Source: Takakia lepidozioides
Lineage: Eukaryota > Plantae > Bryophyta
Direction: 5' to 3'
DNA length: 64,000 nucleotides
Assembly (NCBI GenBank): GCA_030704615.1
Contig: CM060731.1
Coordinates: forward strand, 90,520,001-90,584,000
Numbering within the stretch: position 1 is the stretch's first letter; each line of letters begins with the position of its first letter. The notes under the pieces are model-generated. The model saw only the letters and a list, made by a program, of their open reading frames with translations, ran no database searches and was not told the origin of the DNA. Shown here in pieces: positions 903 through 60,259 of this stretch. A program made the translations under genes and the position numbers.

Positions 903-1009
903 TTAACTGAGCAGCAGCAGTAGCTGCTGAGCACCACCTTCTCAGTCAACCCCCCCCCCCCCCCACCATTTTTTTTTTTTTTGGTTTGTTTTCTGATCTC
1001 TCCCTCTCA

Positions 1010-1040
<31 letters not shown>

Positions 1041-2291
1041 CCCTTTTTTTTTGCTGCTCACAAAAATAAACAAACCACAAGGGAGAGAGGGTGCAGAAAA
1101 AGTTAAAAAGAGAGAGGGAGAGGGAGAGAGACAAAAGAGATGGAGGGAGTGGGAAGAAATTCACGTCATGTCAAGACATGGACAAGACCCATAAGGGTCA
1201 TTGTCAATTAAAGACATGCCCAAGTAGGACTGCTTGGTGGCATATTGTGATTCTGACAAACTGCAGGCTAGTCCTTATGCCTTGGCTGATGCATGATTTG
1301 TCATAATTAATGGCTGAAAAGGTAAGTTGCTGCAACCCGTGGGTCATGTCCAAGATGTATCTATGAAAACGTGTCTTGAAATGGTAATAGGGCAAGCTGG
1401 ACCATGGTACTTTGCCCTTTGCATAACCTCAACACTTTTGTGCTCCTTCAATACATGACCTGCTAGTAAGGTTTGTGTGCAGGCTGAACCAAGAAGCCTT
1501 ACAGCTTGCACAGGGGCAGCAATATCTTATCTTGTCCCACACAAGAACAAACCCCGCCCTCCCACCCTGTTTTGTCTTAGATGATTGGGTGTTGTCATTT
1601 GGGATGATTTGACAAGACTGGAAGTGTGAGATAGTGCCCTATCATGTCAAGGGAATGTGAATTCAGCCTGTCAAATTGCAAGTTCAAGACTTATACATAC
1701 AAGCAACTTGAACAACCGAGATCCAACCTCTTTTGCATATAAAAAAACCAGATTGCAGGTCATAGGCCTGACGTCATGACAAAACCAAAACTATAGGTAG
1801 GATCCCATTGCAGCTTACCATCCTCATCCTTCAAGAGTTCCATGCTAAAGCATGCAAAGAACACCTCACTATGATCCAGTACTCATCAGAAACAGGCCCG
1901 AAAAGGAGCAGGTCGGTGCCTTATCAGGCTGCTGCCATAACATTCAAGGCCACCATGTCCATAGAGACCCAAAACCGCCAAAAACATACCACCTAAAACC
2001 AGATCCTCTTTGGCCAAAAGAACTTACAACCTAGCTCAATAATCCACAGGCCCTGCTGTCAAAGATCAAAAGGTAGGGTATGGTTTGTATGCAAGCCTCA
2101 GGAAACAGGCCAAACAGGCCGAGCTGCGCATCGACGGCAGAACGACAAAGGCCAAAACACAGGCTGTAGCATGCCAAACCAGGAGCAGTCGGGTTGAAAT
2201 CGGGGTTGCAGGCAGCAGCCACCTCACAGCGCAATAACCCACAGGTCTCCTCAGCCCATATCCCAATCTGGATGCTCAAGAAACTTCAAAG
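903..2291 (-). repeat. Dispersed repeat family A, copy 1 (outer end on the left)
   Basis: 1085-1810 is the reverse complement of 16492-17110 and of the 29.7-29.9 kb arm end. 1900-2291 is the reverse complement of 38160-38560. Outer end has (TC)n, poly-T, poly-C and the CTCAGTCA motif. Homology stops at AAACTTCAAAG (2291). Confidence 0.85.
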
Positions 2292-3437
2292 AGATCCGAG
2301 CAAGATTGCCAGGGCGGTGAGCCTTTATGCCGATGGAACCCCTCTCGTGTCAAGAGTTCCACATCTGGAAGGCGAAGAGAGATTCGGCTCTTGCAAGCGG
2401 AAATTGAACACCCCACCTGGTTCGGATGCGGATTCGCACAGGGCAGACCGGGACAACTTCTTCACGCCGCGTGTTCCCTTGCATCATAGATCCATGTCCG
2501 GAACCACCACTGCGGAGGATCCTTCCTCAGGACGCCAAGCCCTTACATCTCCCTCTGTCATTGCAATAGTGCAGGAGAATAACATGCTTCCCGATGTGGT
2601 GGAGTCTATATGCCCCGACGATGTTAGGCACATAGAACGCACCGATGTTGGGTCTCGGGTGAAATGTTCGGGGATCGGGACCACCACTTTCAAAAAGTGC
2701 ACATTTTTCATATCAAGAGGCAGTCCCCGGACTCCGACTCCGACTTTCACTGGATTTTTCCAACCATACGGCCAATCAGAGGCCAAGAACCACAAATTCT
2801 GGTTCTGCGCTGATGACTGTGGCAGAAGCGTGCGTGGAACAATGCGACCATCGGTGGTCATGAAGCCTGCTCCACCAAGCGTTTGGCATGTGAAGGTGGG
2901 GACAGGTCTCTCAGCTCAAGAGATTGCAATGCTTGAGGATGCGGGCTTTTCCCTTGAAAGGCAACGGACTGTGCGTGCAGGTGCATTGTGTTCTGCAAGT
3001 TCTCGATTGCCTCCACCAGATGCTCAATTGTGGCCAACTAGACGGAATGGAAAGCTTGTTCGACGTTTCCCTCCAACTGCTGAACACTTCGGCAAGGTGG
3101 AATCGACAAGATGCTTCAAGGTTGTGTTACAGGCACAACGGAAGTTCCTGATCTAAGGTATGGCCGGATCTACACAGTGGTGACATCGACATCTGCTCTG
3201 CAGGACAAATGTTACGACATCTCTGTCTCGAATTTCCCCAATTGCACCTGTCCAGACTTTGTTAGCATGCTTTCAACAAGTTTGGGAAAGAGAGGAAAAT
3301 TCATTCCCTGCAAACATCTGTATTTCATCTTCTTGAAGACGATGGTTTGTGATCCCAAGCGGGACATCTTCATCCACGAGGCCACTATGGGTTTCAACGA
3401 GGTGAATACACTCTTGCAGCGGGAAACAAGCACATAG
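2292..3437 (+). pseudogene. SWIM zinc-finger protein, 5'-truncated and frameshifted; probably transposon-derived
   Basis: ORFs 2194-3156 and 3111-3437 overlap. The C-terminus has YDISVSNFPNCTCPDF...CKHLYF (SWIM CxC-xn-CxH). Upstream PTFTG/FWFC/VWxV motifs are shared with the copy at 44.7-45.7 kb. Confidence 0.75.
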
Positions 3438-7187: not shown

Positions 7188-8720
7188 GCTGGATGAGTGG
7201 TGCATATTTCTGTCATTTGTCTAAGGTGGAGGAAGTTGGGAAACGATCATTGCAGTATGTGAATTCAATGAAGTGAATGGAGGGATCTGGGGATGGGGTA
7301 GTGGGCTGGGGGCGTTGATGGGTAAACCCTGGATAAACAAGATGTTAGGGCAGAGCCGGGAGGGGCAGGTGCAGGGTGAGCGGGGACAAACACAGGGGAG
7401 AAGCCAGGGGGGGACAGTATGGTCTAGGGGTCTACTTTGGTAGGTGCCGTCATTGATGAATGAGAACCATCTGGTTTCAGGGCGGTTCATGATAAGTTTA
7501 TGAATATGCCAGACGGCGTGGTTGTGACGAGTAATACGGAGGTCGTGGATGACCGGGTGTGTACACTCACTGAGAAGGTGTGGCCATATGTCATGCACCT
7601 GATGGGTATGTGATTAGAGTGGGCAGTTGGGGGATGGGAATAGGCGTGGCCAGAAAATGTGTTTGCGTTGGTGGCCCATGTATTGAGCGTATCGGAATTT
7701 GAGATTTTGTCGTATTTGTGCATCAGTTGCGACTTTGGTGTGCCAGAAGTAGTTTGACAATTTATGATGTAGTACAGTGGATTGCGTCCATTTCTGGATG
7801 TGTATTTTGGTGTGACTAATAGAAGCCGATGCTTGTTTATTAGCCTCCCGAGTAAGTACGGTTAGGAGGTTGCGGATTGGTCGAAGCTCAGGGGGTCTGG
7901 TACAGGGTGTATTAGCCAGCATGGGTGGGTGTGTGCAATGTGAATGGGATCCGATGTGGGATCTACTGGGGGCCGAGCGGCCCCTTGCTGGGCTAGGAGG
8001 TCAGCTACTTCGTTGCCAGTAATACCAGTATGTGAATGAACTTTGATAAGGTGGACTGGTTGGTTCAAGTAAATAAACAGATTAACAATGGCTATAATGA
8101 GGTTCCGGTCAGGGTGGTGGTGGTGGGAAGAGGGTCGAGAAAGGTGATTTCGAATAAGAAAGAGTGAGGTCAGACTATCAGTGAAAATGTAGTGTGGGGG
8201 GGGGGGGAGTTGGGTTTGGGGGATGAGGCCAACTGGGAGAGTGCTTCATAGATGGCCATAAGCTCTGCGCATAGAATGGTGGCAGGGCCGGGGAGTCTAA
8301 GGGCGACACCTTGGTTAGTGGCGGCATGGTATATGCCATAACTAGCTTGGGAGCCGGTTAGGGAGCCGTCGGTATAATGAGAGTTGGTTGGGGGGTATCT
8401 GAGGGGTAGAATCTAGTGGGATAATGGGGGGCACCAACAGCAGATAGTAAGCAGGGGGTGGGGGGCGTGGTAGCGCCCTTGTCCAGGCTTTACATGGGTT
8501 AATCCTGGGGATTGGGCCAGGAGCAGTAGGGTATGGGGATAGGTGCGAGAAGGTGGTGACCTTCATGCCATGTGTACCCGCTAATAGGCGGTTGAGGTAG
8601 GCGGGGAAGTCCGGGGTATGGAGGTGGGGGAGGTATTTTGAACATGCAACACCAAGGTTAGGGTTATCACAGTGCAATAATAGGAATGCTGACAAGTCGT
8701 AGTTAACAGTATTGATAAGC
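7188..8720 (-). mobile_element. Dualen/RandI-like non-LTR retrotransposon fragment (RNase H, CCHC-like finger, restriction-like endonuclease)
   Basis: Minus-strand translation gives CAELMAI...YIFTDSLTS...KVHSHTGITGNEVADLLA (RNase H), then SPNCPL...DIWPHLLSEC, RHNHAV, RLCPNIL, EFTYC and KYAPL (RLE). Contains stops and frameshifts. Confidence 0.8.
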
Positions 8721-8833: not shown

Positions 8834-9331
8834 GAGATAAGAGAAAAGACTACGGCCGAAGCCGACGTAACTAAGAGTCACTTCGCCTCGCGGCTACTGC
8901 CCCCTTTCGAGGGTGGGCCCTATAAGAAAACAGGTGTCCGGGGGACACCGGGTGATCAGGGGGATAGAGGTGTCGAGGGTACCTAGGGTACCGAGGGGGG
9001 GTTGGATTCAAGTTGTCGCTTATTGGTAATAATCGCTGTGAGGGAGCGAAGAGCCGTGAGGTGGCTTGCATTTAAACATTTATGAACATGAGAGATAGGG
9101 ATTTTAAAGTTTTTGTGTATGGCAGTAATACTAGCATTGTGGATGTCACCTCTAACACCGGCAGTGATGACGGTTAGCGGGCCGGTTTGCCAGTCTTGTT
9201 GGCGAATTGCGAAGATGAGCAAGGCATATTTTTGTCGTTAGTCTAAAGTGGAGGAGCTGGGGTAGTGATCGTGGCAGTATGTAAATTCGACGAAGTAAAT
9301 GGTAAGATTTGGGGAACGGGCGTGGGCGGGT

Positions 9332-9370
<39 letters not shown>

Positions 9371-9692
9371 AAGCCATGGACAAGCATGATGTTAGGGCAC
9401 AACATGACGAGACAAGTGCAGGGCGAGTGGAGGCATACACATGGGAGTAAACATGAAGGTACAATGGGGTCTGGGGGTCTTCCTTGGTAGGTGATGGTTT
9501 TAATGAGTGAGAACCATCTGGTTTTGGTGCGGTTCATGAAAAGTTTATGAAGGTGCCAGACGGCATGGTTATGACGAGTTGTGCGAAGTCCGTGAATGAC
9601 AGGGTGGGTACATTGGCTGAGGAGGTGAGGCCAGGTGTCGCGCACCTGGTGGGTGTGTGAGCAGAGTGGGCAGTGTGGGGATGGAAATAGGC
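8834..9692 (-). mobile_element. 5'-truncated Dualen/RandI-like insertion with intact 3' end and 12-bp TSD
   Basis: RLE-region ORFs 9238-9645 and 8983-9222 are followed by a 3' UTR ending GTAGTC-TTTTCTC. Flanked by CATCTCAGCTAA (8822-8833) and CACCTCAGCTAA (9693-9704), one mismatch. Confidence 0.85.
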
Positions 9693-16491: not shown

Positions 16492-17237
16492 GTGGTAAGC
16501 TGCAATGGGATCCTACCTATAGTTTTGGCTCTGTCTTGACATCAAGCCTATGACCTGCAATCTGGTTTTTTATATACAAAAGAGGCTGGATCTCGGTTGT
16601 TCATGCTGCTTGTTGGTACAAGTCTTGAACCTGCAATTTGACAGGCTGCATTCACATTCCCTTGATACCTTGTATGATCACATGTCTCGGGGTGAATACA
16701 AATGATATGGAATTTATTTCATCTTGCTCAAGTTGGACTGCTTGGTGGCATACTGAGATTCTGACAAACTGCAAGCTGGTCCTTATGCCTTGGCTGAAAT
16801 GGTAGGTTGCTGGTATGTGTACAGGCTGAACCAAGAGGCCTAGCAGCCTGCACAGGGACAGCAATATCTTATTTTGTCCCACACAAGAACAAACCCCGCC
16901 CTCCCACCCTGTTGTTTTGTCTTGGATGATTGGGTAATGTCAATTCATGGGAAGCTATGCCAAGAATGGAAATGTTAGATGGTGCCATGTTTTGGGCTGT
17001 TATGTCTTTAAGTGACAATGACCCTAGTAGGGTCTTGTCCATGTCTTGACATGACATGAATATCTTCTCACTCTCTCCCTCTCTCTTTTTAACTTTTTCT
17101 ACCCCCTCTCTCCCTCTGTGGAGAGAGAGAGAGAGAGAGAGAGGGACATATCAGGAAAAAAAAAAAAAAAAAAAAAAATGAAGGTGGGGGGGGGGGAGTG
17201 ACTGAGCCCCTCCCCCCCCCCCACCTTTTTTTTTTTC
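16492..17237 (+). repeat. Repeat family A, copy 2 (outer-end portion)
   Basis: Reverse complement of about 950-1820. Ends (GA)n-polyA-GGTG-polyG-AGTGACTGAGC-polyC-CACC-polyT. Confidence 0.85.
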
Positions 17238-17602: not shown

Positions 17603-20455
17603 AAGAGTGGGAAGATATTCATGTCATGTCAAGACATGGACAAGACCCATTAGGGTCATTGTCAATTAAAGACATAAACAGCCCATGACATGGCACCATC
17701 TAACACTTCCAGTCTTGTCAAAGCAGACCAAGTGACAACACCCATTCAATCATGATCAAATAGGGTGGGAGGGCGGGGTCTATTCATGTTCAAATTCCTG
17801 TAAATAGCCCAAGACATGCACCATGCAAGGCTCCATGGGTACCTTCCTCTTCATCTGAATTCTGGTCATGTTATCAGCTGCATCAGCGCGTACTTCTACC
17901 AACAAAATACTATGTACTATCTTGGCTAAGATAGTCAATGCAAACAGAACAGATTGGGATACAAAGTTGCTAACAGCTTTGTGGTCATACAAGACTTCAT
18001 ATAAAGTCACCACTAAGTATACACCATTCCAATTAATTTATGGTATGGAAGCTTTACTTCCAGTGGAATTCTTGTTACCTACCATGAGAACTGAATGGGG
18101 AAGGAGAATGGAATTGGAAGATTCAATTAAGGTCAGGAAACATGAATTATACCATGTGGAACCATTTGTAGGTACCCCAAGATATGCATCATGCAAGGCT
18201 CCTGGGTAGGTAAGAACAGCCTGTCCTACTACAGATTCAGGATATGTTCATACAAGTACCATGAAGGACCATCCTGCAATTAATCAGATTTCAGGCATGC
18301 AACCAAGTAAACTTCTTGGGCATGACAAAACATATTGCAGCTTCACTCTTTGCCATTTGTAAGTACCCCAAGACAAGGCCTCTTGGGTAGGTAAGAACAA
18401 CCTGCCATACTACAGATTCAAGACATGTATACACAAGCATCTTGATGGACCAACCTGCAGTTTATTAGACTCCAAACAAGCAACCAAGTGACCCACTTGG
18501 GCATGACAAGATAGACTGCAACTTCATTCTACACCATATATAATTGCCCCAAGACATGCATCATGTAAGGCATTTTGGCATGGAAGAAAGGTCTGCCATG
18601 TTACTGCTTCAAGATATGGACACACATACACTTTGAGTGCCCGAGACCAAGCCCACTTGGCCAAAAAATAATAAATTATACATTGCAGGTGGCTGGTCTG
18701 ATGGCAAAATAAGGCAAATAATCACTGGCAAAGGTCCAGTAGAGCTTACCACCATTGTTTTCCAAGAGGCTTATGCCAGGTTTTGCAAATAAAACCTCAC
18801 TATGCTCCATTTCACACCAAATCCAGGCCTGAAAGAGGCCTGTCATTGCCTTATCAGGCTGCCATCTTTAAAAATAGGGCCTCCTCATCCTTAGAACCTA
18901 ACAGCCATTGATGTCTTTACCCATAAACCATAACTCATCTTTTAAGGCCAGAACAGTACCTAGTTTAAAAATCCACAGGCAATGCTGTCAAAGATTCAAG
19001 ACAAGGTAAGGTCCAGATGTTGGGCTTCAAGAGACAAGCCTGTCAGGCCGAAGTGCTCTATCAAAGGCAACAAAACATAAGTCAAAAGTAAGCATTAGCA
19101 TGCCAAACCAGGAGCAAGCGGGCCGAAATCGGGGCTGCAGGCAGCAGCCAAGTCAGGACGCCATACACAATAGATTCCCTTTGCCCACATCCTTATCTGC
19201 AAGCTCAAGAGAATTCAAAGCAAGTAGGGATCCTCACCTGGTCCCATCACAAGCCCCCACAAAAACCAACAGGTTAGTGAGGATTGTGGAACCCCAGGTG
19301 AATCACAGACCCCTACACTTGTCATTGATGTCAACTAAGAACCTCAAAAGCAAGAGAGAAAGACATAAAGCAAAAGGAACCCTAATCACCAAAAGCACCT
19401 TGAGCGATTGGGGAAGATAACTGTGCGCCATCGCCACCAGCAAGCCACCTCCAGCAAAGCTAAGGAGAAATGAAGCATACAAGCACTCTTGCTAGGTTTA
19501 AGAAGGGAGAGAGAGATACTTCCCAACACAAGCGCCGTTGCAAAAATTAAAAGCCAGAGGAGGGAAAGAGACGATGCATTCACAGCATTGTTTCCCGCCT
19601 GTGAGAAAAGACAAAACGCCGCCATTGCGCATCCCCAGGAGATCATCCAGCATGGGTACGATGCAGCAAACAGGGTAGCAGCAAAACGCAGACGCCATAA
19701 CTCTCATCCCGCTAGCTCAGAAGCACGAGCAGTGCTTCTGACGGTGGGAGAGACACCCTAGGGCTCATGCCCGATTTTTCATCCATGCAGGATGAGTAAT
19801 CAACACCACATTTTTCAAAACCCGACAGATGTTATCCGTTAGCTAGGTTTAAACGGGAGGTTATAGGGTAGGGGTTAGGGTTTCACTCCTCAATTAACCA
19901 TAATTAAAGGTAATTAATCATCAGTCCAGGGCCATCATAAGCTGCATATTTCATCCGGTTCAGATGAAAAAGTCAATAAGTTCATTCGTTGGAGAAAGTT
20001 CGTCAGTAGGATGGAAAAACAGTAAATAACATCCAAAGCATCGGTTTCACATCCTAACAGGTAATTCAACATCCCCAAAAAAAATGCCTCATCCAGTATG
20101 GGAAAAAGCCATAAAAGAGGAATGAACGAATTAATATCCTGCTATTTTTCATCTAGTATGGATGGAAAAAATATCTATATAGGATGTCAGTGTCAACCCC
20201 TACAGAGGTAATTCCTCATTCTCTGGTGACTCATCTGGTATGGATGAAAGTCAATAAAAGAGGAATGAAAAAATCATAGACTCAGTTTAGAGGTAATTTA
20301 GTGTTCACCCAGGTAATTCATCCGGTATGGATAAAAAATTGTTATAGGGTGGGTGAAAAAATTGTTTAGAGTCCATCCGGTATAAACAGGAAAAAAAACA
20401 CTGATAAAACCGGCCAATTCCAAGGAGGGAGGGAGACAAAGGGAGAGAGGGGGCA
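17603..20455 (-). repeat. Left inverted arm (family A) flanking the Penelope-like RT
   Basis: Near-continuous reverse complement of 27091-29780. The spurious ORFs 19100-19420(+) and 28209-28442(-) are almost identical. Confidence 0.93.
17843..18161. mobile_element. Captured gypsy integrase fragment in two opposite-orientation pieces
   Basis: 17897-18161(+) encodes TNKILCTILAK...KHELYHVE. 17843-17897(-) encodes EVRADAADNMTRIQMKRK. Both match the integrase at 49.6-49.9 kb. Absent from the right arm. Confidence 0.85.
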
Positions 20456-21519
20456 ACAAACTTGGGATTCGTACATATGTTATACCCCAACTGAGGTATG
20501 GAATGGATAAGCCCTAAAAACATGATTAAGGAAGCTTTGGTGGCTCATGGCCAACATGACCTTGCTCTCCTTGTTGATGAGATTGTCTTTGGTTGGACCT
20601 ATCATAAACAATGCAGTACTGAATTCTACTAGCCTGCTGTTGTTTTCTGTGATTTCAAGTTCTTGCAAGATCTGATTATGTCACCAGAATGCGTCTGTGA
20701 CAGCACAAACAGGTTTCGTGCGTTTGGTGATGAGGCTACTAAAACAGAGTTCCATCTACCTGGCTCTCTTCCCAAACAACATGTACGTACCATGGATCTA
20801 AACATCATCAGACATGACCGATTGAAAGCAGTGTTCAGCCTAGGTATGAATCACATTCCTCTCAAACGCACCTTGTTGAAGGATGTGGTTGAACAAGTCC
20901 CCTCTGCTTTTTTCAAGACATGTAACATTCTACAAATAAATACTTGTGAGGATTTGCAGCTTATGGCTGAAAAACTCATGTTGGGATAGACTGAAACAAA
21001 AAGCCAGCAGACGTAATGGCCGTTTCAATCACCATGAAAGAAATCTTTTTTTAGTGCAAGAGGCACGGGATGAACTCGAATGGCTCCTTTCTCACCTTTA
21101 CATGTCTGGACTTGACAAGGCTAACAACAATGTATGTTTTATGTGTGTGAAGCACATAAGCTCAAGCATACCACCGACTGATGGGTAAAGATTTCAAACC
21201 CTGTTATGAAAATGAGGTATGGCTTTTACCCGATTCTGTCTTGTTAAGCATTTCTGAAGAATTACAGAAGTTGCTACCTGAAATACCAGCAGCGGCATGT
21301 AACCTCCCCTACATGATGGGAATTTACAAGCTACACAAAAAGAAGTACCGCTGGATTACCAACGCCCATAAGTGTATTTTCAGCGAACTTGCCAGTCTAT
21401 TGACACGTGCCACCATGGACTTATTGCATTGGGTAAAGGAATGGGTCAAAGCACGGCTTGATACTTATGAGAATTTTTTCAAAGTGTCCACTTCCATGTA
21501 CTGGATAATAGACAACATC

Positions 21520-22248
21520 TGTCGCGGGCCTTTGCCTTGAGGGCAGGGGGTCGGGACACATGAGGGGCTGCCCCTGTGGTGGGGGCAGCGGCAGCGATAG
21601 GTACGGGGGGCTGAAGCACCCTTGAGTGCCAAAGGCACTCAAGGAGGCGGAGGCGCTCACTAGGTGGAGCCCCGCACACCGGGTTGCGGTGGGGGTGGCT
21701 CCACAAGGGGTGGTGGTAGCTTAGTGGGACTTAGTGGGGGGGCATAGGACTCACCATGGGGGCGGGAGACCTCGTGGTGGGAGTCCTGGGGAGTCTTGGG
21801 ACTCATCACGGCCCAATGGGGCCATGGTGGGTGGGCCAAGACTCACCGCGACTCATCACCGGGAGTCGAGGGTTTTTGTGGTGGTTCGCCATAAAATGGC
21901 ATGGTTGTTTGTGAAACCCCCGCGGACAGCTACAGAAGTATATATAGGGAGTAGTAACCCCGAGAACGGTGCAAGCCCGTTGGTGACCAAAAACTAGTGA
22001 GTAAGCGAGCGAGCCGGAAAGCGACCAAAGAGTGGGAGTTGTTGTTCCGGACTGCCAACTACCAAAGGGAATTCCCACTGGGCCCAAATTGGTGGAGGGT
22101 TCTGTGGGAGAGCGAAGGGGGACCGTTATGTCCCGGTGAGCAGCCGAAGCTCCAAGTTGGCCCGGCGGCTAGGTTGGGAGTTAGGCGCGCGCATCAAAGC
22201 GAGTAACTATGACTTGAAGGGGAGCTTACCGAAGTGAGGTGCGCGACA
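21520..22248 (+). repeat. 5' LTR
   Basis: TG...CA termini, direct repeat of 25114-25846, internal TATATA, followed by the PBS. Confidence 0.95.
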
Positions 22249-22250
22249 TT

Positions 22251-22262
22251 TGGTATCAGAGC
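22251..22262 (+). promoter_or_regulatory. Primer binding site (initiator tRNA-Met)
   Basis: TGGTATCAGAGC two bases after the LTR end. Confidence 0.92.
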
Positions 22263-22303
22263 CTAGAGTTCAGTACGTGATCGTCCTTGGGATTGGCCTC
22301 ATC

Positions 22304-23957
22304 ATGGGATCGGGCAAGCCAAAGCGGAAGCGGAACGGCCCAAAGGATGATGATCCTGGTGAGCCTGATGGGGGCGACGTGTCACCAAGGCGGCCGTTTG
22401 AGGAAGCGATGCATGTTTCCGAGAACGAGGCCGCTCAAGAGCGGGAGGAATCTGAGGAGTCGGAGCCCGAGGTATCCTCGAGAGCTCCGACCGACCAACA
22501 GATGCCTCCCATGCCGGCAGCCTTTTGGGAAGGTTTGTTGGCGCAATTTGGCGGGACGTTGAAAGACGTGTTGAAGGCGGCTAATGTCACTTCCACTAAG
22601 GTAAAGTTTAAGGTGAAGCCTAAGGAACCCGGCACCTTCGAGGGCGTCCGAAATCGGAAGGCACTCAACACCTGGCTCTTGGAGCTAGAGCAGTACTTCC
22701 GGGCGGCCAAGTTGAGTGACGAGGATCGGGTGGAAGTGGCTCCCACCTATTTGAGGGGCTATGCTCAACAATGGTGGCAGAAACGCCTTCACGACCGAGG
22801 TCCAAGCCCGGAAACCTTGAACTGGAGTGGGTTCAAGGAATTGATGAAGAGGCAGTTTGTGCCCCTCAACGCTTCTTGGCTTGCCCGGGACAAGATGAGG
22901 AATTTGAAGCAAACAGATGACATTCGGGGATATGTCCAGGCTTTCAATGTGCTTTTGCTCGAAGTCGCGGACATGGCAGAACCAGAAATGGTCTTCAACT
23001 TTGTGGCGGGACTGGCCCCATGGGCCAAGTGGAAGTTGGAGGAGAAGCCACCTAAGACTTTGAACGAGGCAATTGAGAGGGCTGATTGTTTCTCGGATGT
23101 CCCTAGGGGTGAAAGACAAGGCCGTACGGAGCTGAACCACAAGAAGACCCGGCGGGAAGGTGACTCCTTCTGACCGGAAAAGAAGTGGGATAGGCCACCC
23201 TGGCACGTGGAAATCGAAGGGAGGGCCTTCACACGTCAAGGCGGCACCCGGTGCTTCGAAAGGAAAAGTGGGTGGAGCGGCCTATGGCGGACAGAAGGCG
23301 ACCTTTGATGGAGTGTGTTTCAATTGCAGGGAGCCCGAGCACATGGCCAAGAAGTGCACGAAGCCCCGGCAATTGAACATGACTCAGGCGACCACAGAGC
23401 TGTCGGAAGATACCATCGGTCGCTTGGTGGAAGCGGTCGCCAGGACTTGCAAGGTAGGCAAATTTTCTTGTGAGTTGTATCAGGAAACTGACGCCTTACG
23501 TAAAGGGAGTCAGTTATTGTTCGTGGATGGGATAATATTCGGAACTAACGTGTCGTTGTTGGTGGGAGCGTCGCACTCCTTCATGACACCGGCAACGGCA
23601 CAAAAGCTGGGACTCCCGACAAGTGACGTGGGGGCCTCTATTGAGGTGCATTCTGCCAAAGGACAACCACAATTGGCGACGAGGTTGGCGTTCGATGTCC
23701 CTCTTCAACTGGGGAGTTGGGAAGGACGTGAGAACTTCACCATTTGCGAGATCGATGGAGTGGATCTCATTTTGGGGATGACCTTTTTGAGCAAATCCGG
23801 AGCGGTCATAGATGGCCGCAAGAGAGTAGTCACGCTGCCATGTGGGGATGGTGGCAAAGTCTTACGAGTGTCGGAAATGCCCAAACCCGTGGGAGGGCGA
23901 ATAAACCTTCTGTCAGCAAGGGAGTGGATCGTGGAAGAAACACACGAGCCCCGATGA
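22304..23957 (+). CDS. gag: gag (with CCHC knuckle) plus aspartic protease; one frameshift
   Basis: KEPGTFEGVRNRKALNTWLLELEQYF gag motif, CFNCREPEHMAKKC knuckle, and DLILGMTFL protease C-terminus. Frameshift near 23160. Confidence 0.88.
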
Positions 23958-24207
23958 AGCGCGTCCGAATCGACATCAAGTGTTACGTCCACCACCTGTG
24001 TTGTTGGATCATGAAAATGAACCTGAGTACGAGGTGGAGGCAGTGCTTAAGTCGAGGAGGTTCAAGAACCGAGAAACGGAGTATCTCGTGAAATGGAAGG
24101 GCTATCATCATGTGGAGGCATCTTGGGTGCGTGCCTCAGTAATGGAAAACGCATCCGAGGCGGTTGCAGCGTTCGAAGGGCGACCTCAAAAGCGGAAGAA
24201 GCGTTGA
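23953..24207 (+). CDS. Integrase C-terminal chromodomain remnant
   Basis: EYEVEAVLKSRRFKNRETEYLVKWKGYHHVEASWV is a canonical chromodomain. Confidence 0.9.
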   Translation, partial: DEARPNRHQVLRPPPVLLDHENEPEYEVEAVLKSRRFKNRETEYLVKWKGYHHVEASWVRASVMENASEAVAAFEGRPQKRKKR

Positions 24208-25113
24208 TGGGGACATCAACCTTGGAGCGTGGGGGAGGAAATGCATGCTTAGCCTGGCTTAGCTAGCTCAGGAATCCGATTGCAAAAACTTGTATTGTAC
24301 AAAAATTTGTTATAAAGGAAATGGGTTCCAAATGTTGTGCGTCCCATTTTGTTTAGAATGGTGATACATGGTGTGGTTGGCTAGTGTGTAGAATGCATGC
24401 TAGCTTACAAAAGTGGGAGAGGTAAATTGGGTTAATCGTGTGTTTGCGTAGTGCCAAAATCGGGTGACTCCCATCCAAGGGGCAAGGTAACATGCGCCTT
24501 CTTTGGGAGTTCACGTGCTAGTGCGCACCTGGCGCGTGCGCGTACTATAACTGCGCTACCGAGGTGGTTGCCTTGTAGTGCGGGCTAACGCGGAAGCTAC
24601 GTGCTTCCGTTCACGTACTATAATTGTGTAGCCTCGGGACGAAGTCGTAATGCGGCTTCGACGTGTTCCCGTACCTCAGGCCAGCATTCCAAGACGGACC
24701 CAATTGTAGTGATTGGGGCGTACGGTTGGTTCAAGGTTATCTTCCTAGTCAAATGGGGTTCGAGGTGAACCCTTGCGCAAGGTGATGCCAAAAGCGGCAT
24801 CATGAGCGATCGCAAGCAATGTTGTTGCAGTAAGGCGATTCGATCCTCGGGGAGGATCATTCCCTGGCCTTGAAGTAGGCCAAGAAGAGTGCACTGGGAG
24901 GAGCTTGAGAGGCTCCACCCCTGGCCGGGACTTGGAGGAAGTCGGCCGAACTAGCTAGTGGAGAGTAGAGTCAAGTGTGGGGTTTGGTTCTTTGCCATGG
25001 GACGCCATGGTACGGAAACAAACTCCTTGATGTGGGACACCACAACTTGGATGTTCGTTTCTACAAAATGGACAAGTCGATGAGGACATCGACTCCCTGT
25101 TGGTAGGGGTGTG

Positions 25114-25846
25114 TGTCGCGGCCCTTTGCCTTGAGGGCAGGGGGTCGGGACACATGAGGGGCTGCCCCTGTGGTGGGGGCAGCGGGCGCAGCGATAGGTA
25201 CGGGGGGCTGAAGCACCCTTGAGTGCCAAAGGCACTCAAGGAGGCGGAGGCGCTCACTAGGTGGAGCCCCGCACACCGGGTTGTTGCGGTGGGGGTGGCT
25301 CCACAAGGGGTGGTGGTAGCTTAGTGGGACTTAGTGGGGGTGGCATAGGACTCACCATGGGGGCGGAGACCTCGTGGTGGGAGTCCTGGGGAGTCTTGGG
25401 ACTCATCACGGCCCAATGGGGCCATGGTGGGTGGGCCAAGACTCACCGCGACTCATCACCGGGAGTCGAGGGTTTCGTGTGGTGGTTCGCCATAAAATGG
25501 CATGGTGTTTGTGAAACCCCCGCGGACAGCTACAGAAGTATATATAGGGAGTAGTAACCCCGAGAACGGTGCAAGCCCGTTGGTGACCAAAAACTAGTGA
25601 GTAAGCGAGCGAGCCGGAAAGCGACCAAAGAGTGGGGAGTTGTTCCGGACTGCCAACTACCAAAGGGAATTCCCACTGGGCCCAAATCGGTGGAGGGTTC
25701 TGTGGGAGAGCGAAGGGGGACCGTTATGTCCCGGTGAGCAGCCGAAGCTCCAAGTTGGCCCGGCGGCTAGGTTGGGAGTTAGGCGCGCGCATCAAAGCGA
25801 GTAACTATGACTTGAAGGGGAGCTTACCGAAGTGAGGTGCGCGACA
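25114..25846 (+). repeat. 3' LTR
   Basis: Direct repeat of 21520-22248, followed by TSD ACATC. Confidence 0.95.
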
Positions 25847-27090
25847 ACATCTCTGATTTTACTCTGAATCTACCTGCAAAGATCCATGACGTGTTTGTCG
25901 CTAACATCACTCAATGTTACGAAAACATACCTTTGACAGGTGAAGATAATTTGGGTGCCGCCATCGAATACGTGGTTCAGATTGCCTTCCGGCAATACCA
26001 CATTGCCCACCCTCGATCCAACCACTCACTATGGATTTCAGCCAGGAATGACACCTTCGGGAAATGTAGGTGGGGACCTTCCTCTCCTAAAACTGGTACG
26101 TGGATTGAGCTCTCCGAAGCTAGATTGCTTGGGCTCCACAAGTGATTGATGACTCATTGCTTTGTTGCTTTGGGGGATCGAGTTTGGCAACAAGTTTCTG
26201 GCATACCCATGGGTTTTTCATGTTCTCCTTTATGGTGTGATATTTACTTCTTGTCCTATGAACTAAGATTCATCCTCCGATTGGCGGCTCTAGGACAGTT
26301 CCTGCTTATGGCTAAATTTAAATCAGCCTTACGGTACATTGATGACATCTGTTGGTTGAATGTTGGTGATGCTAAGCTATTTCTTGATCCTCCTACGGAC
26401 AGAAATAGCCAAAACCCATGGTGGGTTTACCCACTCAATGTAGTGGAAATTAAACCGGAGTTATTAAGAACCAAGGATACACCTTACACTGGCCTGGAAG
26501 CTTGTTTTATGAATGTACAGATCAGTGTACTGAATCCTGATACTGGTTTGTTTCAGTTCCGGAAATATGATAAGAGAAGGATGCTGCCCTTTTCTTACAC
26601 ACAATACATCCAGTTCCTTTCTAACCGACCTGTAAATCAGTCTTACAATGTGGTGGTCTCCCAGGCTTTCCCTATTCTGTATATTTCCAGCAGCACTGAC
26701 TTTGCCTAGAATGAATGTTGTGCTCTTATCCAAACCCTTGGGAGGAATGGCTTCAAGACCAAGAAGCTGGTTCGAATCCTCATTAAGTTCCTGGAACATG
26801 GCTCTTTTCCTGGTCTCCACTTCCTGCTACACGAGCTAATTACCAAGCTAAGAGGTATAATGGATTCCACATGACCTTATACATGTCCTCTTTTGTTCAA
26901 GTGGCTGATATGTGTTTAAAGGGAGGAAGTAGGTTTTTCCAACCCCTTTGGCAATCTTGTCCAGGGATTGGGAACTATTTTTGCAGTAGGAGAAACCTTG
27001 TGAAGGGGTCTAGTATGCACTCCCTTATGGGGTGAGTGCATACCACACTCACTCCATAAGGAACTGCCACACCAGGGGCTGGTTGGTGGG

Positions 27091-29884
27091 TGCGCCCTCT
27101 CTCCCTCTGTCTCCCTCCCTCCTTGGAATTGGCCGGTTTTATCAGTGTTTTTTTCATGTTTTTCCATCTATACCGGATGGACTCTAAACAGTTTTTTCAC
27201 CCCCCCATAACAATTTTTTATCCATACCGGATGTATTACCTGGGTGAACATTAAATTACCTCTAAACTGAGTCTATGATTTTTTCATTCTTCTTTTATTG
27301 ACTTTCATCCATACCACATGAGTCACCAGAGAATGAGGAATTACCTCTGTAGGGGTTGACATTGGCATCCTATATTTTTTTTTTTCCATCCATACCGGAT
27401 GAAAAGTAGCATGATATTAATTCGTTCATTCCTCTTTTATGGCTTTTTTCCGTACTGGATGAGGCATTTTTTTGGGGATGTTGAATTACCTGTTAGGATG
27501 TGAAACCGATGCTTTGGATGTTATTTACTGTTTTCCATCCTACTGACGAACTTTCTCCAACGGATGAACTTATTGACTTTTCATCTGAACCGGATGAAAT
27601 ATGCAGCTTATGATGGCCCTGGACTGATCATTAATTACCCTTAATTATGGTTAATTAAGGAGTGAAACCCTAAACCCTACCCTACAACCTACTGTTTAAA
27701 CCTAGCTAACGGATGACATCCGTCGGGTTTCGAAAAATGTGGTGTTGATTACTCATCCTGCACGGATGAAAAATTGGGCATGAGCCCTAGGGTGTCTCTC
27801 CCGCCGTCAGAAGCACTGCTTGTGCTTCTGAGCTCGCGGGATGAGAGTTATGGCGTCTGCATTTTGCTGCTACCCTGTTTGTTGCATCGTACCCATGCTG
27901 GACGATCTCCTGGGGATGCGCAATGGCGGCGTTTTGTCTATTCTCACAGGCGGGAGACTATGCTGTGAATGCATTGTCTCTTTCCCTCCTCTGGCTTTTA
28001 ATTTTTGCAGCGGCGCTTGTGTTGGGAAGTATCTCTCTCTCCCTTCTTAAACCTAGCAAGAGTGCTTGTATGCTTCACTTCTCCTTAGCTTTGCTGGAGG
28101 TGGCTTGCTGGTGGCGATGGCGCACAATTATCTTCCCCAATCGCTCAAGGTGCTTTTGGTGATTAGGGTTCCTTTTGCTTTATGTCTTTCTCTCTTGCTT
28201 TTGAGGTTCTACATCGATGACAAGTGTAGGGGTCTGTGATTCACCTGGGGTTCCACAATCCTCACTAACCTGTTGGTTTTTGTGGGGGCTTGTGATGGGA
28301 CCAGGTGAGAATCCCTACTTGCTTTGAATTCTCTTGAGCTTGCAGATAAGGATGTGGGCAAAGGGAACCTATTGTGTATGGCGTCCTGACTTGGCTGCTG
28401 CCTGCAGCCCCGATTTCGGCCCGCTTGCTCCTGGTTTGGCATGCTAATGCTTACTTTTGACTTATGTTTTGCTGCCTTTGATGGAGCACTTCAGCCTGGC
28501 AGGCTTGTCTCTTGAAGCCCAGCATCTGGACCTTACCTTGTCTTGAATCTTTGACAGCATTGCCTATGGATTTTTAAACTAGGTACTGTTCTGGCCTTAA
28601 AAGAGGAGTTATGGTTTATGGGTAAAGGCATCAATGGCTGTTAGGTTCTAAGGATGAGGAGGCCCTGTTTTTAAAGATGGCAGCCTGATAAGGCAATGAC
28701 AGGCCTCTTTCAGGCCTGGATTTGGTATGGAATGGAGCATATAGTGAGGTTTTATTTGCAAAACCTGGCATAAGCCTCCTGGAAAACAATGGTGGTAAGC
28801 TCTACCGGACCTTTGCCAGTGATTATTTGCCTTATTTTTCCATCAGATCAGCCACCTGCAATGTATGATTTATTATTTTTTGGCCAAGTGGGCTTGGTCT
28901 CGGGCACTCAAAGTGTATGTGTGTCCATATCTTGAAGCAGTAACATGGCAGGCCTTTCTTCCATGCCAAAATGCCTTACATGATGCATGTCTTGGGGAAA
29001 TTATACATGGTGTAGAATGAAGTTGCAGTCTGTCTTGTCATGCCCAAGAGTCACTTGGTTGCATGTTTGGAATCTAATAAACTGCAGGCTGGTCCATTAA
29101 GATGCTTGTGTATACATGTCTTGAATCTGTAGTATGGCAGGTTGTTCTTACCTACCCAAGGGGCCTTGCATGATGCATGTCTTGGGGTACTTACAAATGG
29201 CAAAGAGTGAAGCTGCAATATGTTTTGTCATGCCCAAGAAGTTTACTTGGTTGCATGCTTGAAATCTGATTAATTGCAGGCTGGTCCTTCAAGGTACTTG
29301 TTTGAACATATCCTGAATCTGTAGTAGAACAGGCTGTTCTTACCTACCCAAGGAGCCTTGCATGATGCATGTCTTGGGGTACTTACAAATGGCAAAGAGT
29401 GAAGCTGCAATATGTTTGTCATGCCCAAGATATTACTTGGTTGCATGTTTGAAATCTGGTAAATTGCAGGCTGGTCCTTCAAGGTGCTTGTATGAACATA
29501 CCCTGAATCTGTACATAACTGGGCAGGCGGTTCCTACCTACCCAAGGAGCCTTGCATGGTGCATGTCTTGGGTTACTTACAGGAATTTGAACATGAATAA
29601 ACCCCGCCCTCCCACCCTGTTTTATCATGATTGAATGGGTGTTGTCACTTGGTCTGCTATGACAAGACTGGAAGTGTTAGATGGTGCCATGTTTATGGGC
29701 TGTTTATGTCTTTAATTGACAATGACCCTAGTAGGGTCTTGTCCATGTCTTGACATGACATAAATATCTTCCCACTCTCTCCATCTCTTTTGTCTCTCTC
29801 CCTCTCCCTCTCTCTTTTTAACTTTTTCTGCACCCTCTCTCCTTATGTGGTTTGTTTATTTTTATGAGCAGCAAAAAAAAGAGG

Positions 29885-29942
<58 letters not shown>

Positions 29943-30045
29943 AGGAAACAAAAAAAAAAAAAAAAAAAAAAAAAAAAGGTGGGCGGAGAGTGACAGAGCA
30001 AGCTGCTGCTCAGTCACTCCCCCCCCCCCCCCACCTTTCTTTTTT
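27091..30045 (+). repeat. Right inverted arm (family A, longest copy)
   Basis: Reverse complement of 17603-20455. Contains a CATCC-N4-GGATG array, a ~190-bp tandem repeat (28.95-29.58 kb), (GA)n, poly-A and a terminal palindrome. Confidence 0.93.
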
Positions 30046-30329
30046 CCCTTTGTTGCCCTCGAGACCCCCAGCACTTGCTGCTCTCAGCCCCCACATGCTT
30101 GGTTTTTTTTGTTTTTGATCTAGAATGTAGAGGTTGTTTCCTAATGAGGCCAACTTTTGGGTTTGCATGACAGGTGCCAGGCTTATGGGAAAGAGAAGAA
30201 GTCCCTGCCCCAAAGAAAGGGCGGAGAATCCGTTTGCTGTCGGCACATGTGACGCGCCAGGGCGTCTCACGGTCTACCAGCCCCATCGACAGCCGCAGCC
30301 GGAGGGCTCGTCTGCCCCCCCGAGGCCAG

Positions 30330-31408
30330 TATCCCAATTACCCTCATTCTCTCCTCCCCACTACATCTTTGCGGACAGTCTCACATTGCTTTTCCTTATT
30401 TGTAACCACCTCTTCTGCCCCTCCTCACACCATCACCATCCAGATCGTAACCTTATTGTAGCCATAGCCAGACTTGCAATAGACCTAGGCCAACCCATCC
30501 ACTTCCTGAAAGTCCGCTCACATACCAATATTGTTGGCAATGAGGAGGCTGACCTCCTCGCTCAAACTGGCATTGTCGAGCCCCTTGTCGATCCCATCAA
30601 CGATCATATTCACACTACGCACACCCATCCAATTTGGCTAATACACCCAGTCCCAAAACCCCTAGACCCTAAGCCTATATGTAACCTCCTTACTATCCTC
30701 ACTAAGGAGGCGGCCAATCAGCAAGCTAGGACATCTATGAGTCACACCAAAATCCACATTAAAAAATGGACACTCTCCACTATATTCCATCATAAACTCT
30801 CCAACTATTTCTGGCACTCCAAAGCTGCGACCGATGCTCAAATTAGACAAACGCTTAAATTTTGATACGCTCAATACATGGGCCACCAACGCAAACATGT
30901 CTTTTGGCCATGCCTATTTCCCTCACCAAACTGCCCTCTATGCTCTCACACCCATCAGGTTAGAGACACATGGCCGCATCTTTTGAGCCAATGTACCCAC
31001 CCGGTCATCCACGACCTAGTCATCCACGACCTACATATAACCCGTCATAACCAAGCAGTCTGGCACATCCACAAACTCCTTATGCAACGCTCCGAAACCC
31101 GCTGGTTCTCACTCCTCAATGCAGGCACCTACCAAGGTAAACCTCCAGACCATACTGTCCCACCATGGCTACTCCCATGCATGTGTCCGCGCTCTCCTTG
31201 CACCTGTCCTGCCAGGCTATGCCCTGACATCCTGCTTGTTCACGGCCTACCCATCAATACCCAGCCACCTACCTCCCCATCCTCACATATCACCATCTAT
31301 TTTGTCGAATTCACATACTGCCATGATCGCTACCCCACCTCCTCCATTTTAACAAAATGACAAAAGTATGCACCACTTACCCTTGCTATCCGTCGCAGGG
31401 GCTGGAAT
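30330..31408 (+). mobile_element. Dualen/RandI-like fragment (RNase H, CCHC, RLE); its 3' end lies at 40.1-40.5 kb
   Basis: YIFADSL, KVRSHTNIVGNEEADLLA, CPLCSHTHQVRDTWPHLLSQC, RHNQAV, RLCPDIL, FVEFTYCHD and KYAPL..AIRRRGW. Confidence 0.85.
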
Positions 31409-37199: not shown

Positions 37200-37522
37200 C
37201 CAATTTGGAGCTAGTTAAAAGGGGTTCATGTATGAGAACATACTTACACGATTTGGCTGTCCCCTGGAATTTATCAGTGAGCAGGGAAGTCACTTCATTA
37301 ATAAGACCATTGAACTATTAACTAAAGAGTTCATGATTGTGCATAGGAAGAGTACGACTTATTACCCACAGGGTAATGGGCAGGCAGAGGCTACCAACAA
37401 AATACTATGTACTATCTTGGCTAAGATAGTCAATGCAAACAGAACAGATTGGGATACAAAGCTGCTGACAGCTTTGTGGTCATACAGGACCTCATATAAA
37501 GTCACCACTAAGTATACACCAT
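37200..37522 (+). mobile_element. Gypsy integrase core fragment
   Basis: YENILTRFGCPLEFISEQGSHF...YPQGNGQAEATNK, nearly the same as 49440-49730. Confidence 0.88.
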
Positions 37523-38575
37523 CCTATTTTAAACCCTGCCACGGATGGAATCCGTCAGGGTAGAAGGATGTGTTCTACTGTTTTTCATCCACGGATGAAA
37601 AATCAGGGGAAAAAACCCTATGGTGTCTCTCCCGCTGTCAGAAGCACGCGATGTGCTTTTGAGTTCGCAGGGAGAGTGTTATGGCGGACGTGCTTTGGTG
37701 GCTGCCTCGTTTGTGGTGTCGTTCCCGTGCTGGACGAGCGCCTGGGGGGGGCGCAAAGGCGCGCCCTTGTCTCTCTTGCAGCGGGAAACTCTGTTGTGAA
37801 TGCAGTGGCATCTTCCTTCCTCTGGCTTTTAAGTTTAGCAAGGGCATTTGTGCTAGGAAGTCTCTCTCCCTCCTTTCTATTGCCTTGCGAGTTTGCCTGC
37901 TTTGCTTCATTGCTCATATGCTTTGTAGAGGCGGCTTGCTGCGGGTGATGATGGCGCATAACCCTCTTCCCCAATCGCTTAAGGTGCCTTTGGAGTTTAG
38001 GGATTCTCATGTTCTTATCTTCTTCTCTTGCTTTTGAGTTTCTTAGTTGACATCGATCACAATTGTGAGGGTCTGTGATTCACGCTGGGGTTCCACAATC
38101 CTCACTAATCCGTTGATTTTGTGGGGGCTTGTGATGGGACCAGGTGAGGATCCTCACCTACTTTGAAGTTTCTTGAGCATGCAGATTGGGATATGGGCTG
38201 AGGAGACCTATGGGTTTGTGCGCTATGAGGTGGCTGCTGCCTGCAGCCCCGATTTCAACCCGACTGCCCCTGGCTTGACATGCTACAGCCTGCGTTCTGG
38301 CCTTTGTCGTTCTGCCGCCGATGCGCAGCTCGGCCTGACTGGCCTGTTTCCTGAGACTTGCATACAAACCATACCCTACCTTTTGATCTTTGACAGCAAG
38401 GCCTGTGGATTATTAAGCTAGGTTGTAAGTTCTTTTGGCCAAAGAGGATCTGGTTTTTGGTGGTATGTTTTTTGGCGGTTTTGGTGTGTCTATGGACATG
38501 GTGGCCTTGAAGTTTATGGCGGCAGCCTGGTAGGGTACTGCCCTGCTCTTTTTCAGGTATTTTAGAATTATGGCT
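37523..38575 (+). repeat. Repeat family A, copy 5 (internal portion)
   Basis: Collinear with 27690-28720 (diverged) and close to the reverse complement of 1900-2291. Confidence 0.85.
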
Positions 38576-43434: not shown

Positions 43435-44695
43435 TGTCGCGCACCTCACTCCGGTAAGCTCCCCTTCAAGTCATAATTACTCGCTTTGATGTGCGCGCCT
43501 AACTCCCAACCTGGCCGCCGGGCCAACTCGGAGCTTTGGCTGCTCACCGGGACATAACGGTCCCCCTTTTCTCCCCCAACAGACCCTCCACCAATTTGGG
43601 CCTAGAGGAAATTCCCTTTGGTAGATGGCAGTCCGGAATAGCTCCCCACTTCTTGGTCGCTTTTCGGCTCGCTCGCTTACTCACTAGTTTTTGGTCACCA
43701 ACGGGCTTGCACCGTTCTCGGGGTTACTACTCCCTATATATACTTCTGTGACTGTCCGCAGGGGTTTCACAAACAACCATGTCATTTTATGGCGAACCAC
43801 CACGAAGACCTCGATTCCCGGTGATGAGTCGCGGTGAGTCTTGGCCCACCCACCACGGTCCCATTGGACCGTGATGAGTCCCAAGACTCCCCACGCCTCC
43901 CACCACAAGGTCTCCGCCCCATGGTGAGTCCTATGCCACCCCCACTAAGTCCCGCTAAGCTACCACCACCCCTTGTGGAGCCACCCCCACCGCAACTCGA
44001 TGTGCGGGGCTCCACCTAGTGAGCACCTCCGCCTCCTTGAGTGCCTTGGGCACTCAAGGGTGCTTCAGCCCCCCGAACCTATCCCTGCCACTGCCCCCAC
44101 CATAGGGGCAGCCCCTCTTGCGTTCCGACCCCCTGCCCTCAAGGCAAAGGGCCGCGACACACACCCCTACCAACAGGGAGTCGATGTCCTCATCGACTTG
44201 TCCATTTTGTAGAAACGAACATCCAAGTTGTGGCGTCCCACATCAAGGAGTTTGTTTCCGCACCATGGCGTCCCATGGCAAAGAACCAAACCCCACACTT
44301 GACTCTACTCTCCACTAGCTAGGCCAAGCATGCATTTCCTCCCCCACGATCCAAGGTTGATGTCCCCATCAACGTTTCTTCCGCTTTTGAGGTCGCCCTT
44401 TGAAAGCTGCAACCGCCTCGGATGCGTTTCCCATTTCCGAGGCACGCACCCAAGATGCCTCCACATGATGATAGCCCTTCCATTTCACGAGATACTCTGT
44501 TTCTCGATTCTTGAACCTCCTCGACTTAAGCACTGCCTCCGCCTCGTACTCAGGTTCATTTTCATGATCCAACAGCACAGGTGGCGGACGCAACACTTGA
44601 TGCCGATTCAGACGTGCTTCATCTTTGAAGTACAACTTCAAAAGGGAGACATGGAATATCGGATGCACCTTGCTATTTGCAAGCAGCTCCAATTA
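43435..44695 (-). mobile_element. 3' end of the Galadriel-like chromovirus (integrase C-terminus, chromodomain, 3' LTR 43435-44159)
   Basis: VHPIFHVSLLK and chromodomain in ORF 44369-44692. The LTR is the reverse complement of 25114-25846 with the same termini. Confidence 0.92.
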
Positions 44696-59248: not shown

Positions 59249-60259
59249 TGTTAGAGGACTGTAGGGGACTTAGACACTTATACGGGATCTGTAGGGTACC
59301 CTTAATTTTTGCACAGACTGAGACAAACAGGAACCTTAGGGGTGACAGCAGCGCACTGTAGAGGGGGGTTACATAGCCCACACAGCCGACACAGCAGTCA
59401 CAGCCCACACAGCCAACACAGCCCGTCACAGTCGTCACAGCCCACACAGCCGTCACAGCCCATCACAGTCGTCACAGCCCACACAGCCCACACAGCCCAC
59501 ACAGCCGTCACAGCCCACACAGCCCGTCACAGTCGTCACAGCCCACACAGCCCACACAGCCAGTCACAACCCGGCACAGCCACACAGCCAGTCACAGCCC
59601 GACACAGCCAAACACAGCCAGTCACCGCTTGACACAGCTGTCACGATAATAGGGAACGAAGAGTAGGACAGGGAACGACTGTGGGGAACAACACCTGTGA
59701 AGGGAACATGTTAATTCACATACGACGGTTAGAGAGGGAAACGGTTAGAACCGCGGATAGGAGGATAAAGGGAAGAACGGGGAATGATGAGGGGATCATT
59801 ATTCGGGGAGGACTTCGGAGACAGGCGGGAGCGGAGATCGGAGAGCACGATGAAGGAGAAAAGAGGATTAGTAGATGCTTGTTATATGCAAAGCTATAGT
59901 GATATAGGAAAGAAGAATAGAGACATAATGGCTTCGGCCTGATACCTGATAAATCATAATCTGATACTTATACGATACAATCACACTGTGTAGAGAGATC
60001 TGAGTGAAGCTGTGGATTGAATGGAGGAGTTAAGGAAACCGATAAATTGATGAAGCAAACTGATACTTAATTATCAATGGTAAGGTAGCTAAGATGAATG
60101 CGGAAAAGGAAACAAATAGGAAACACCCCCATGATACACTAGCTGTAGGTCATGACTGATTGTTCTGCGCGGGCTGAGTACTTAGAGATTTCCAACTCTT
60201 CTATCTTGGAGTTTCCGCCTCGGATAGCGAAGGGATGGGTGAGTAAAAGCCGCGCGACA
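59249..60259 (+). repeat. 5' LTR of a nested non-chromovirus gypsy element, with an internal CACAGCC minisatellite (59373-59640)
   Basis: TG start interrupts the chromovirus integrase. The CA end is followed by a PBS. The 3' end is shared with 47296-47450. Confidence 0.8.

Follow-up and report, generated by a model that had tools for sequence, protein, structure and literature searches.

A disrupted reverse transcriptase between two inverted arms

We analysed a stretch of 64 000 nucleotides from the moss Takakia lepidozioides (contig CM060731.1 of assembly GCA_030704615.1, forward strand, positions 90 520 001–90 584 000), hereafter the window, from whose first letter all positions are counted. 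It holds the reverse transcriptase (RT) of a Penelope-like element (PLE) enclosed by two long arms in inverted orientation. The RT is a dead, 5′-truncated copy of a two-ORF (open reading frame) element of the PLE-X type, which lacks an endonuclease (EN), and we argue that the arms are the pseudo-long terminal repeat (pLTR), or leader module, of the same lineage. The arm–RT–arm unit is made up of the following features.

17604–20455, minus strand: left arm, read as an inverted copy of the pLTR/leader, from a CT-tract start (equivalent to 27091) to a second CT-tract start (equivalent to 29778)
17842–18161, plus strand: Ty3 integrase fragment inside the left arm, 91% identical to 49603–49866 and 95% to 37391–37529
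19222–19351, minus strand: covarying RNA stem (leader motif), conserved, left-arm copy
20456–21519, plus strand: 5′ part of the 5′-truncated, disabled ORF2, with CxC..H linker and DKA motif
21520–25846, plus strand: non-autonomous long terminal repeat (LTR) element of Ty3/chromovirus type, with gag, protease and chromodomain and no RT
25852–26874, plus strand: 3′ part of ORF2, RT core with YIDD, and thumb; two in-frame stops; 50–53% identity to intact relatives
26998–27090, plus strand: conserved 3′ motif, pseudoknot-like fold in an enclosing stem, with a CT-rich tract immediately after
27091–30054, plus strand: right arm, read as the pLTR/leader module; its outer end is not sharp and repeat-level depth runs on to about 30260
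27165–27768, no strand assigned: array of CATCC-N5-GGATG palindromes (15 matches against 2.1 expected) and telo-box-like repeats
28191–28320, plus strand: covarying RNA stem (leader motif), conserved, right-arm copy; also reads as branch point, AG and GT donor
28918–29581, plus strand: tandem unit of about 192 bp in the right arm, about 3.2 copies
29780–30054, plus strand: end block of CT tract, (GA)n, A run, G/C hairpin (29978–30035), T run and module junction

Once its two halves are joined after excision of the LTR element, the RT aligns to residues 22–711 of the intact 713-aa ORF2 of a relative (contig L069); the joined form was used for BLAST, while the protein database searches ran on single unbroken pieces. 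The CxC..H linker, DKA and YIDD motifs are all legible. The original prediction had described a single RT-only ORF between the arms. The RT does sit between them, but it is broken by four in-frame stops (20492, 20630, 26143 and 26707), at least two frameshifts (near 20960 and 21160) and the 4.3-kb Ty3-type insertion, and 216 bp of 3′ noncoding DNA lie between its stop at 26874 and the right arm. The first 6 nt of the 5′ part also match the native module junction (microhomology). No ORF1 was found in the window with an ORF1 hidden Markov model (HMM) and tblastn, and the predicted absence of an endonuclease from the window element is borne out. The CxC-bearing N-terminal extension is missing because the copy is 5′-truncated.

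The LTR element inside the RT has LTRs at 21520–22248 and 25114–25846 and a target-site duplication (TSD), ACATC, at 21515–21519 and 25847–25851. Its LTRs are separated by a Kimura two-parameter (K2P) distance of only 0.007, compared with 0.037 for the arms (61 transitions and 21 transversions over 2280 aligned columns), so the insertion is younger than the arm pair. An LTR with an internal remnant of the same LTR family (92–94%) lies at 43435–44623 on the minus strand. A second inverted pair (54602–55565 and 63030–64000, 82%) surrounds another Ty3-type element, of which 55580–57566 matches 21931–23955 of the RT-inserted element at 83%.

By self-BLAST, 18162–20455 pairs in inverted orientation with 29392–27091 at 94.9% over 2316 columns and 17604–17841 with 29778–29539 at 95%. 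The arms are closer to each other, as had been predicted, than to the remaining partial copies in the window (927–2291, 16584–17236 and 37528–38557), which reach 65–86% identity. The left arm lacks the outer block 29779–30054 (CT/GA/A-run/hairpin) and ends at the equivalent of 29778, whereas the right-arm end block carries the hairpin plus a T run. In the left arm about 146 bp are also swapped for the 320-bp integrase fragment, which makes the arms asymmetrical; this fragment is probably a later repair filler. A TSD search at every candidate end of the arm–RT–arm unit found none. The palindrome and telo-box array is promoter-like, a function that we infer from its make-up.

Several further observations concern the arm family. 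The end block is seen at 29780–30054, 17060–17236 and 927–1160; it has no counterpart in the relatives, whose modules terminate in hammerhead-like cores, and it may be a Helentron-like end. The Ty3 integrase region adjoins arm sequence twice, once as the left-arm filler and once (37391–37529) where the third arm copy has its truncated start. The older copies 927–2291 and 16493–17236 have common pieces in alternating orientation (1217–1289 and 1470–1638 direct, 1647–1820 inverted), which suggests an internal inversion. By eye, a SWIM-type zinc-finger remnant (MULE-like) at 2194–3437 cuts off the first of these copies at 2291; Pfam found nothing in the ORF at 2194–3153.

Relatives of the element and identity of the arm

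Homologues at 50–60% identity were found in environmental assemblies, and a profile search also recovered proteins of Chara braunii and Selaginella moellendorffii; an ORF1 homologue is present in Ceratodon. The intact relatives have two ORFs, and neither their full ORF2s nor their ORF1 contain a GIY-YIG domain (Pfam and pattern searches). The ORF1 of these relatives shares homology with the CxC..C-bearing N-terminal extensions of two proteins, Selaginella EFJ12422 (HH probability 96%) and Chara GBG83558 (99%), and the CxCX1–8C-type trait itself is found in the ORF1 of the closest relatives. Such a cysteine-bearing extension is what defines the EN-less PLE-X group (PMC8557442; Craig, 2021), whose moss members were predicted there from BlastP hits and not curated. 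Of the original prediction of a land-plant Chlamys-type PLE, the CxC linker, the DKA motif and the Naiad/Chlamys clade stand, but the element is not a GIY-YIG Chlamys: it is an EN-less PLE-X with a separate ORF1, and none of the full-length relatives carries the domain. In a quick RT tree built without curated references, the window falls in a 14-row clade of environmental proteins (SH-aLRT 95), with the Selaginella and Chara rows nearby and weak deep forks; this sequence tree is compatible with PLE-X and is not a formal placement.

The unit order in the intact relatives is (CT/CTT)n, leader/pLTR (1–2.5 kb), ORF1, RT, 3′ pseudoknot-like motif and (CT/CTT)n. Contigs L013, L015, L016 and L064 read as circularly permuted units of tract, leader (1.1–2.5 kb), ORF1, ORF2, motif and tract. 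No rRNA match was found around the element, whose ends adjoin CT/CTT tracts and not 28S rDNA. ORF1 is modelled with confidence, at a pLDDT of 81 (87.5 for the conserved domain). The model gave nothing above background against PDB (Foldseek), VIA wide, BFVD and the ESM Atlas, with best Z values of 5.2 for a coiled helix and 3.6 for the conserved domain, which is no proof of a new fold.

Four loci outside the window are of interest here. At L069:10001–13994 an apparently intact ORF1 (567 aa) and ORF2 (713 aa) are flanked by long (TTC)n runs and by leader modules that differ from each other, making this copy a good candidate for biochemistry. At L067:5296–11757 and L068:4827–11568 the PLE copies are broken off in mid-ORF2, with a DUF7869 gene about 4 kb further on in each. 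Finally, an annotated gene of Ceratodon purpureus (L066:10001–12519) is homologous to ORF1; neither an RT nor a leader motif lies within 10 kb of this gene, which may be a remnant or have been domesticated.

The relatives also reveal what the arm is. In eight of them a conserved 3′ motif of about 90 nt comes after the RT, with (CT)n or (CTT)n immediately behind it. An HMM of this motif, built from the relatives only with no window sequence, matches 26998–27090 (E 3e-10); the match stops one base short of the arm, whose first feature is a degenerate CT tract. A second conserved motif of about 120 nt, the leader motif, sits 0.4–1.5 kb beyond the tract in the relatives. With an HMM that again came from the relatives only, its matches in the window all fall in arm sequence, namely the left arm, the right arm and the third copy (E 6.5e-10 for the left arm, 5e-8 and 1.7e-7), compared with a best E of 0.63 in 20 shuffled windows. 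The leader motif lies downstream of the RT and 3′ motif in all ten relatives with enough downstream DNA, in one of them weakly. Direct duplicates in L001 (99.3%) and L070 (99.8%) begin exactly at the tract after the 3′ motif, like the inverted arm, and leader-only modules are stacked with (TTC)n between them in L001, L002 and L069, some ending in hammerhead-like cores. At the DNA level, the leader motif is the only part in which the arm is detectably homologous to the relatives' leaders. We conclude with high confidence that the arm is this lineage's pLTR/leader module, among the longest in its range, and the right arm lies at the normal place of a pLTR, just after the 3′ motif and CT tract.

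Both motifs are predicted to fold as RNA. The interrupted stem of the leader motif has 93.9% of its cells paired, with a compensatory change in 11 of its 20 pairs, compared with 34–54% paired after sliding of the partners. A model-fitted alignment that uses held-out copies gives the same result, although an alignment of this kind leans towards the model. From the splice-like signals in its sequence, a splicing role for the leader motif is possible. The 3′ motif is foldable, in a topology test, as an H-type pseudoknot inside an enclosing stem: none of 40 shuffles reaches its score for the window, L015, L018 and L065, and the other copies are weaker (2–6 of 40). When the window and six relatives were scanned with Rfam, the only matches were chance hairpins, with no hammerhead or other ribozyme, and neither motif matches an Rfam family. 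Degenerate hammerhead-like cores, not scored by Rfam, are present in L001, L002, L004 and L069.

We then estimated abundance from same-species contigs, assembled from four runs of one sample (probably another accession) and mapped to 25852–30400; the public runs contain only about half of the sampled window words. In run X1, with a single-contig depth of about 20–50, the summed depth is 0.4–1.3 thousand for the RT, 2–7 thousand for the arm body, about 20 thousand each for the leader motif and the end block, and about 260 thousand for the 3′ motif, values that give orders of magnitude only since summed contig depth is not copy number. The arm is about five times deeper than the RT, so arms do occur without RT. 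The predicted long noncoding terminal region that also occurs alone is thus supported, with the correction that it is a pLTR/leader, 1–2.5 kb long in relatives. Close arm copies number roughly in the hundreds by summed contig depth, and many contigs are 95–99% alike. One read contig links the hairpin to sequence like the arm start, which points to head-to-tail modules. In summed depth the 3′ motif at 27002–27090 exceeds the RT a few hundredfold and the arm by a factor of tens, and additional copies of it likewise terminate in a CT run. This 3′ end is common to some very abundant short family or to another retroelement.

How the arm–RT–arm unit may have arisen

From the parts of the unit and their homologies, which are observed, we infer how priming, stalling and joining would have proceeded. 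The reading that we favour, at a probability of about 0.55, is that one retrotransposition event at a DNA break made the whole unit. Purine-rich 3′ DNA ends would have annealed to the CU-rich tracts of an RNA composed of ORF2, pseudoknot, (CU)n and pLTR. A first cDNA would have copied the pLTR, the 3′ motif and nearly all of ORF2, while the other end would have primed, at the distal CU tract, a second cDNA that copied the pLTR only and halted at the tract/pseudoknot boundary. The joining of the two cDNAs through about 6 nt of microhomology would have left head-to-head pLTRs, as in other PLEs. Decay by point mutation would have followed, as would the integrase filler and the Ty3 insertion. The left outer end does lie at the start of the distal CT tract, adjoining a purine-rich flank. 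The right arm departs from the family majority at 15 well-supported sites; the left arm follows the majority at 13 of them and has the same rare base as the right arm at two. These shared rare alleles suggest that both arms came from one source copy, so the predicted single-event origin is plausible and not proven.

Several points weigh against this reading. At the left inner junction, 6–7 nt are shared with the native hairpin-to-module junction (30046–30054, one read contig), and they can be explained as well by a DNA template. The right arm has no defined outer end, in L069 the upstream leader and the module after the 3′ motif are not copies of each other, ORF1 follows none of the arm ends in the window and no hammerhead was found in the arm or the window. 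Moreover, the same-species contigs are too short to read other RT copies across the RT–arm junction.

The best surviving alternative is that a truncated PLE landed at the CT-tract start of an existing pLTR-only module and that the downstream flank was duplicated in inverted orientation, after a microhomology-guided jump of the cDNA end to an intact copy of the target DNA, for example the sister chromatid. The native module-junction bases at the left junction would then be expected, as would the stacks of unlike modules after PLE 3′ ends in L002 and L069, the fivefold depth of the arm over the RT and the continuation of the right arm into more repeated sequence; the shared rare alleles fit equally well. 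However, the junction bases encode conserved RT residues, hence no DNA template is needed, the left outer end at a CT tract suits RNA priming, and near-identical direct leader copies in L001, L004 and L070 show that one event can copy the leader together with the rest. We regard this alternative as serious but unlikely.

It is improbable that the arms are chance neighbours, that is, that insertion or deletion in a heavily scrambled region brought a separate module of the same subfamily into inverted position next to a PLE that had been truncated before. The region is indeed rearranged, and hundreds of close arm copies, many of them 95–99% alike, could have supplied such a module, but the two arms share their starting base as well as rare alleles, and no spacer intervenes on the left. 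The original prediction had also envisaged a foldback or terminal inverted repeat (TIR) DNA transposon with the RT as cargo, to which two Helentron-like ends may be added. The long inverted repeats, palindrome array and terminal hairpin recall such elements, yet no candidate end pair has a TSD, the outer ends are unequal, no transposase is enclosed and the arm, whose covarying stem is strand-specific, shares homology with PLE leaders; we find this origin very improbable. An assembly artefact is hardly credible, because the divergence of the arms is transition-rich (82 substitutions at a 3:1 bias) and accompanied by indels and the filler.

How PLE-X elements insert without an endonuclease is unknown according to PMC8557442. 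This lineage offers several handles on the question: the fixed (CT/CTT)n junctions, the 3′ pseudoknot-like motif, the covarying leader stem, the intact copy in L069 and the ORF1 domain without a structural match. The two conserved RNA motifs may explain insertion without a cutting enzyme. Telomerase RT has its closest relatives in the RTs of PLEs, and a conserved RNA architecture in PLEs is for this reason of evolutionary interest. We may even wonder whether the bryophyte PLE-X is a telomerase-like, break-primed system for CT/GA microsatellites. In such a system the pseudoknot by (CU)n would set where copying starts and stops, the pLTR stem would belong to a protein-binding or self-processing class outside Rfam, ORF1, with no recognized fold, would target or cut, and the same signals would mobilize pLTR-only modules of the order of a thousand in the Takakia genome, and far more short 3′-motif copies. 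This joint reading is speculative and, taken whole, doubtful. The locus itself is an ordinary dead copy, and its interest lies in the conserved RNA signals and EN-less insertion of its lineage. It also indicates that multi-kilobase inverted repeats in the Takakia genome need not be the TIRs of DNA transposons.

Elsewhere in the window, three related fragments lie at 30353–31377 (plus strand), 7196–8200 and 9224–9692 (both minus strand). One has a weak RNase H match (E 0.008), and by eye they show CCHC and restriction-like endonuclease motifs and are Dualen/RandI LINE-like. A 9-bp tandem array of about 27 copies (59371–59625) lies within an LTR element.

Comparison with known systems

Athena and Coprina are telomere-attached, EN-less PLEs with a simple-repeat tract by the 3′ end, for which annealing to an exposed DNA 3′ end has been proposed. 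They have in common with the present lineage the lack of an endonuclease, the short simple-repeat tract beside the 3′ end and the head-to-tail chains. They belong to a different RT clade, however, and the repeat here is an interstitial CT/GA microsatellite and not a telomeric repeat.

The PLE-X elements of Chara braunii and Selaginella (PMC8557442) have, as here, an RT with CxC linker and DKA motif and no GIY-YIG. In the relatives studied here, by contrast, the extension is a separate ORF1, the ends lie at (CT)n or (CTT)n where Selaginella PLE-X targets 28S rDNA, and the pLTRs measure 1–3 kb, with no canonical hammerhead in the window copy. PMC8557442 makes no mention of the 3′ pseudoknot-like motif or of the leader stem. 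Our literature search, mostly without subscription papers, found no account of the two-ORF bryophyte form, CT-tract anchoring, 1–3 kb pLTRs or the two RNA motifs, and no further description in the literature on PLE-X, Takakia and moss Penelope.

The layout has clear precedents. In Adineta vaga, a truncated, stop-containing Pen2 copy is flanked by inverted 212-bp pLTRs without a TSD (PMC3846280), and inverted 5′-truncated copies are standard for Naiad/Chlamys (PMC8557442, Fig. 2). These share with the Takakia unit the 5′ truncation, the stop codon, the inverted pLTRs and the lack of a TSD, and microhomology at 5′ junctions has been described for them; pLTRs are both tandem and inverted in this lineage, as in PLEs generally. 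The Pen2-type pLTRs, however, are about 0.2 kb long in an element with an endonuclease, compared with about 2.7–3 kb and none here. The MRC1-like non-autonomous Chlamys elements and the pLTR-derived non-LTR retrozymes (PMC8557442; 10.64898/2026.07.22.740005) provide a parallel for pLTR-like units that outnumber the RT and stack head-to-tail; the units here are much longer, and the window modules end in the GA/A-run/hairpin block with no detectable hammerhead. The original prediction that this architecture was undescribed at its scale therefore holds for its size and not for its arrangement, truncated PLEs with inverted pLTRs and no TSD being on record. The layout itself is known, and what is new is the pLTR scale of about 3 kb, the anchoring at CT tracts, the pLTR-only stacks and the two RNA motifs.

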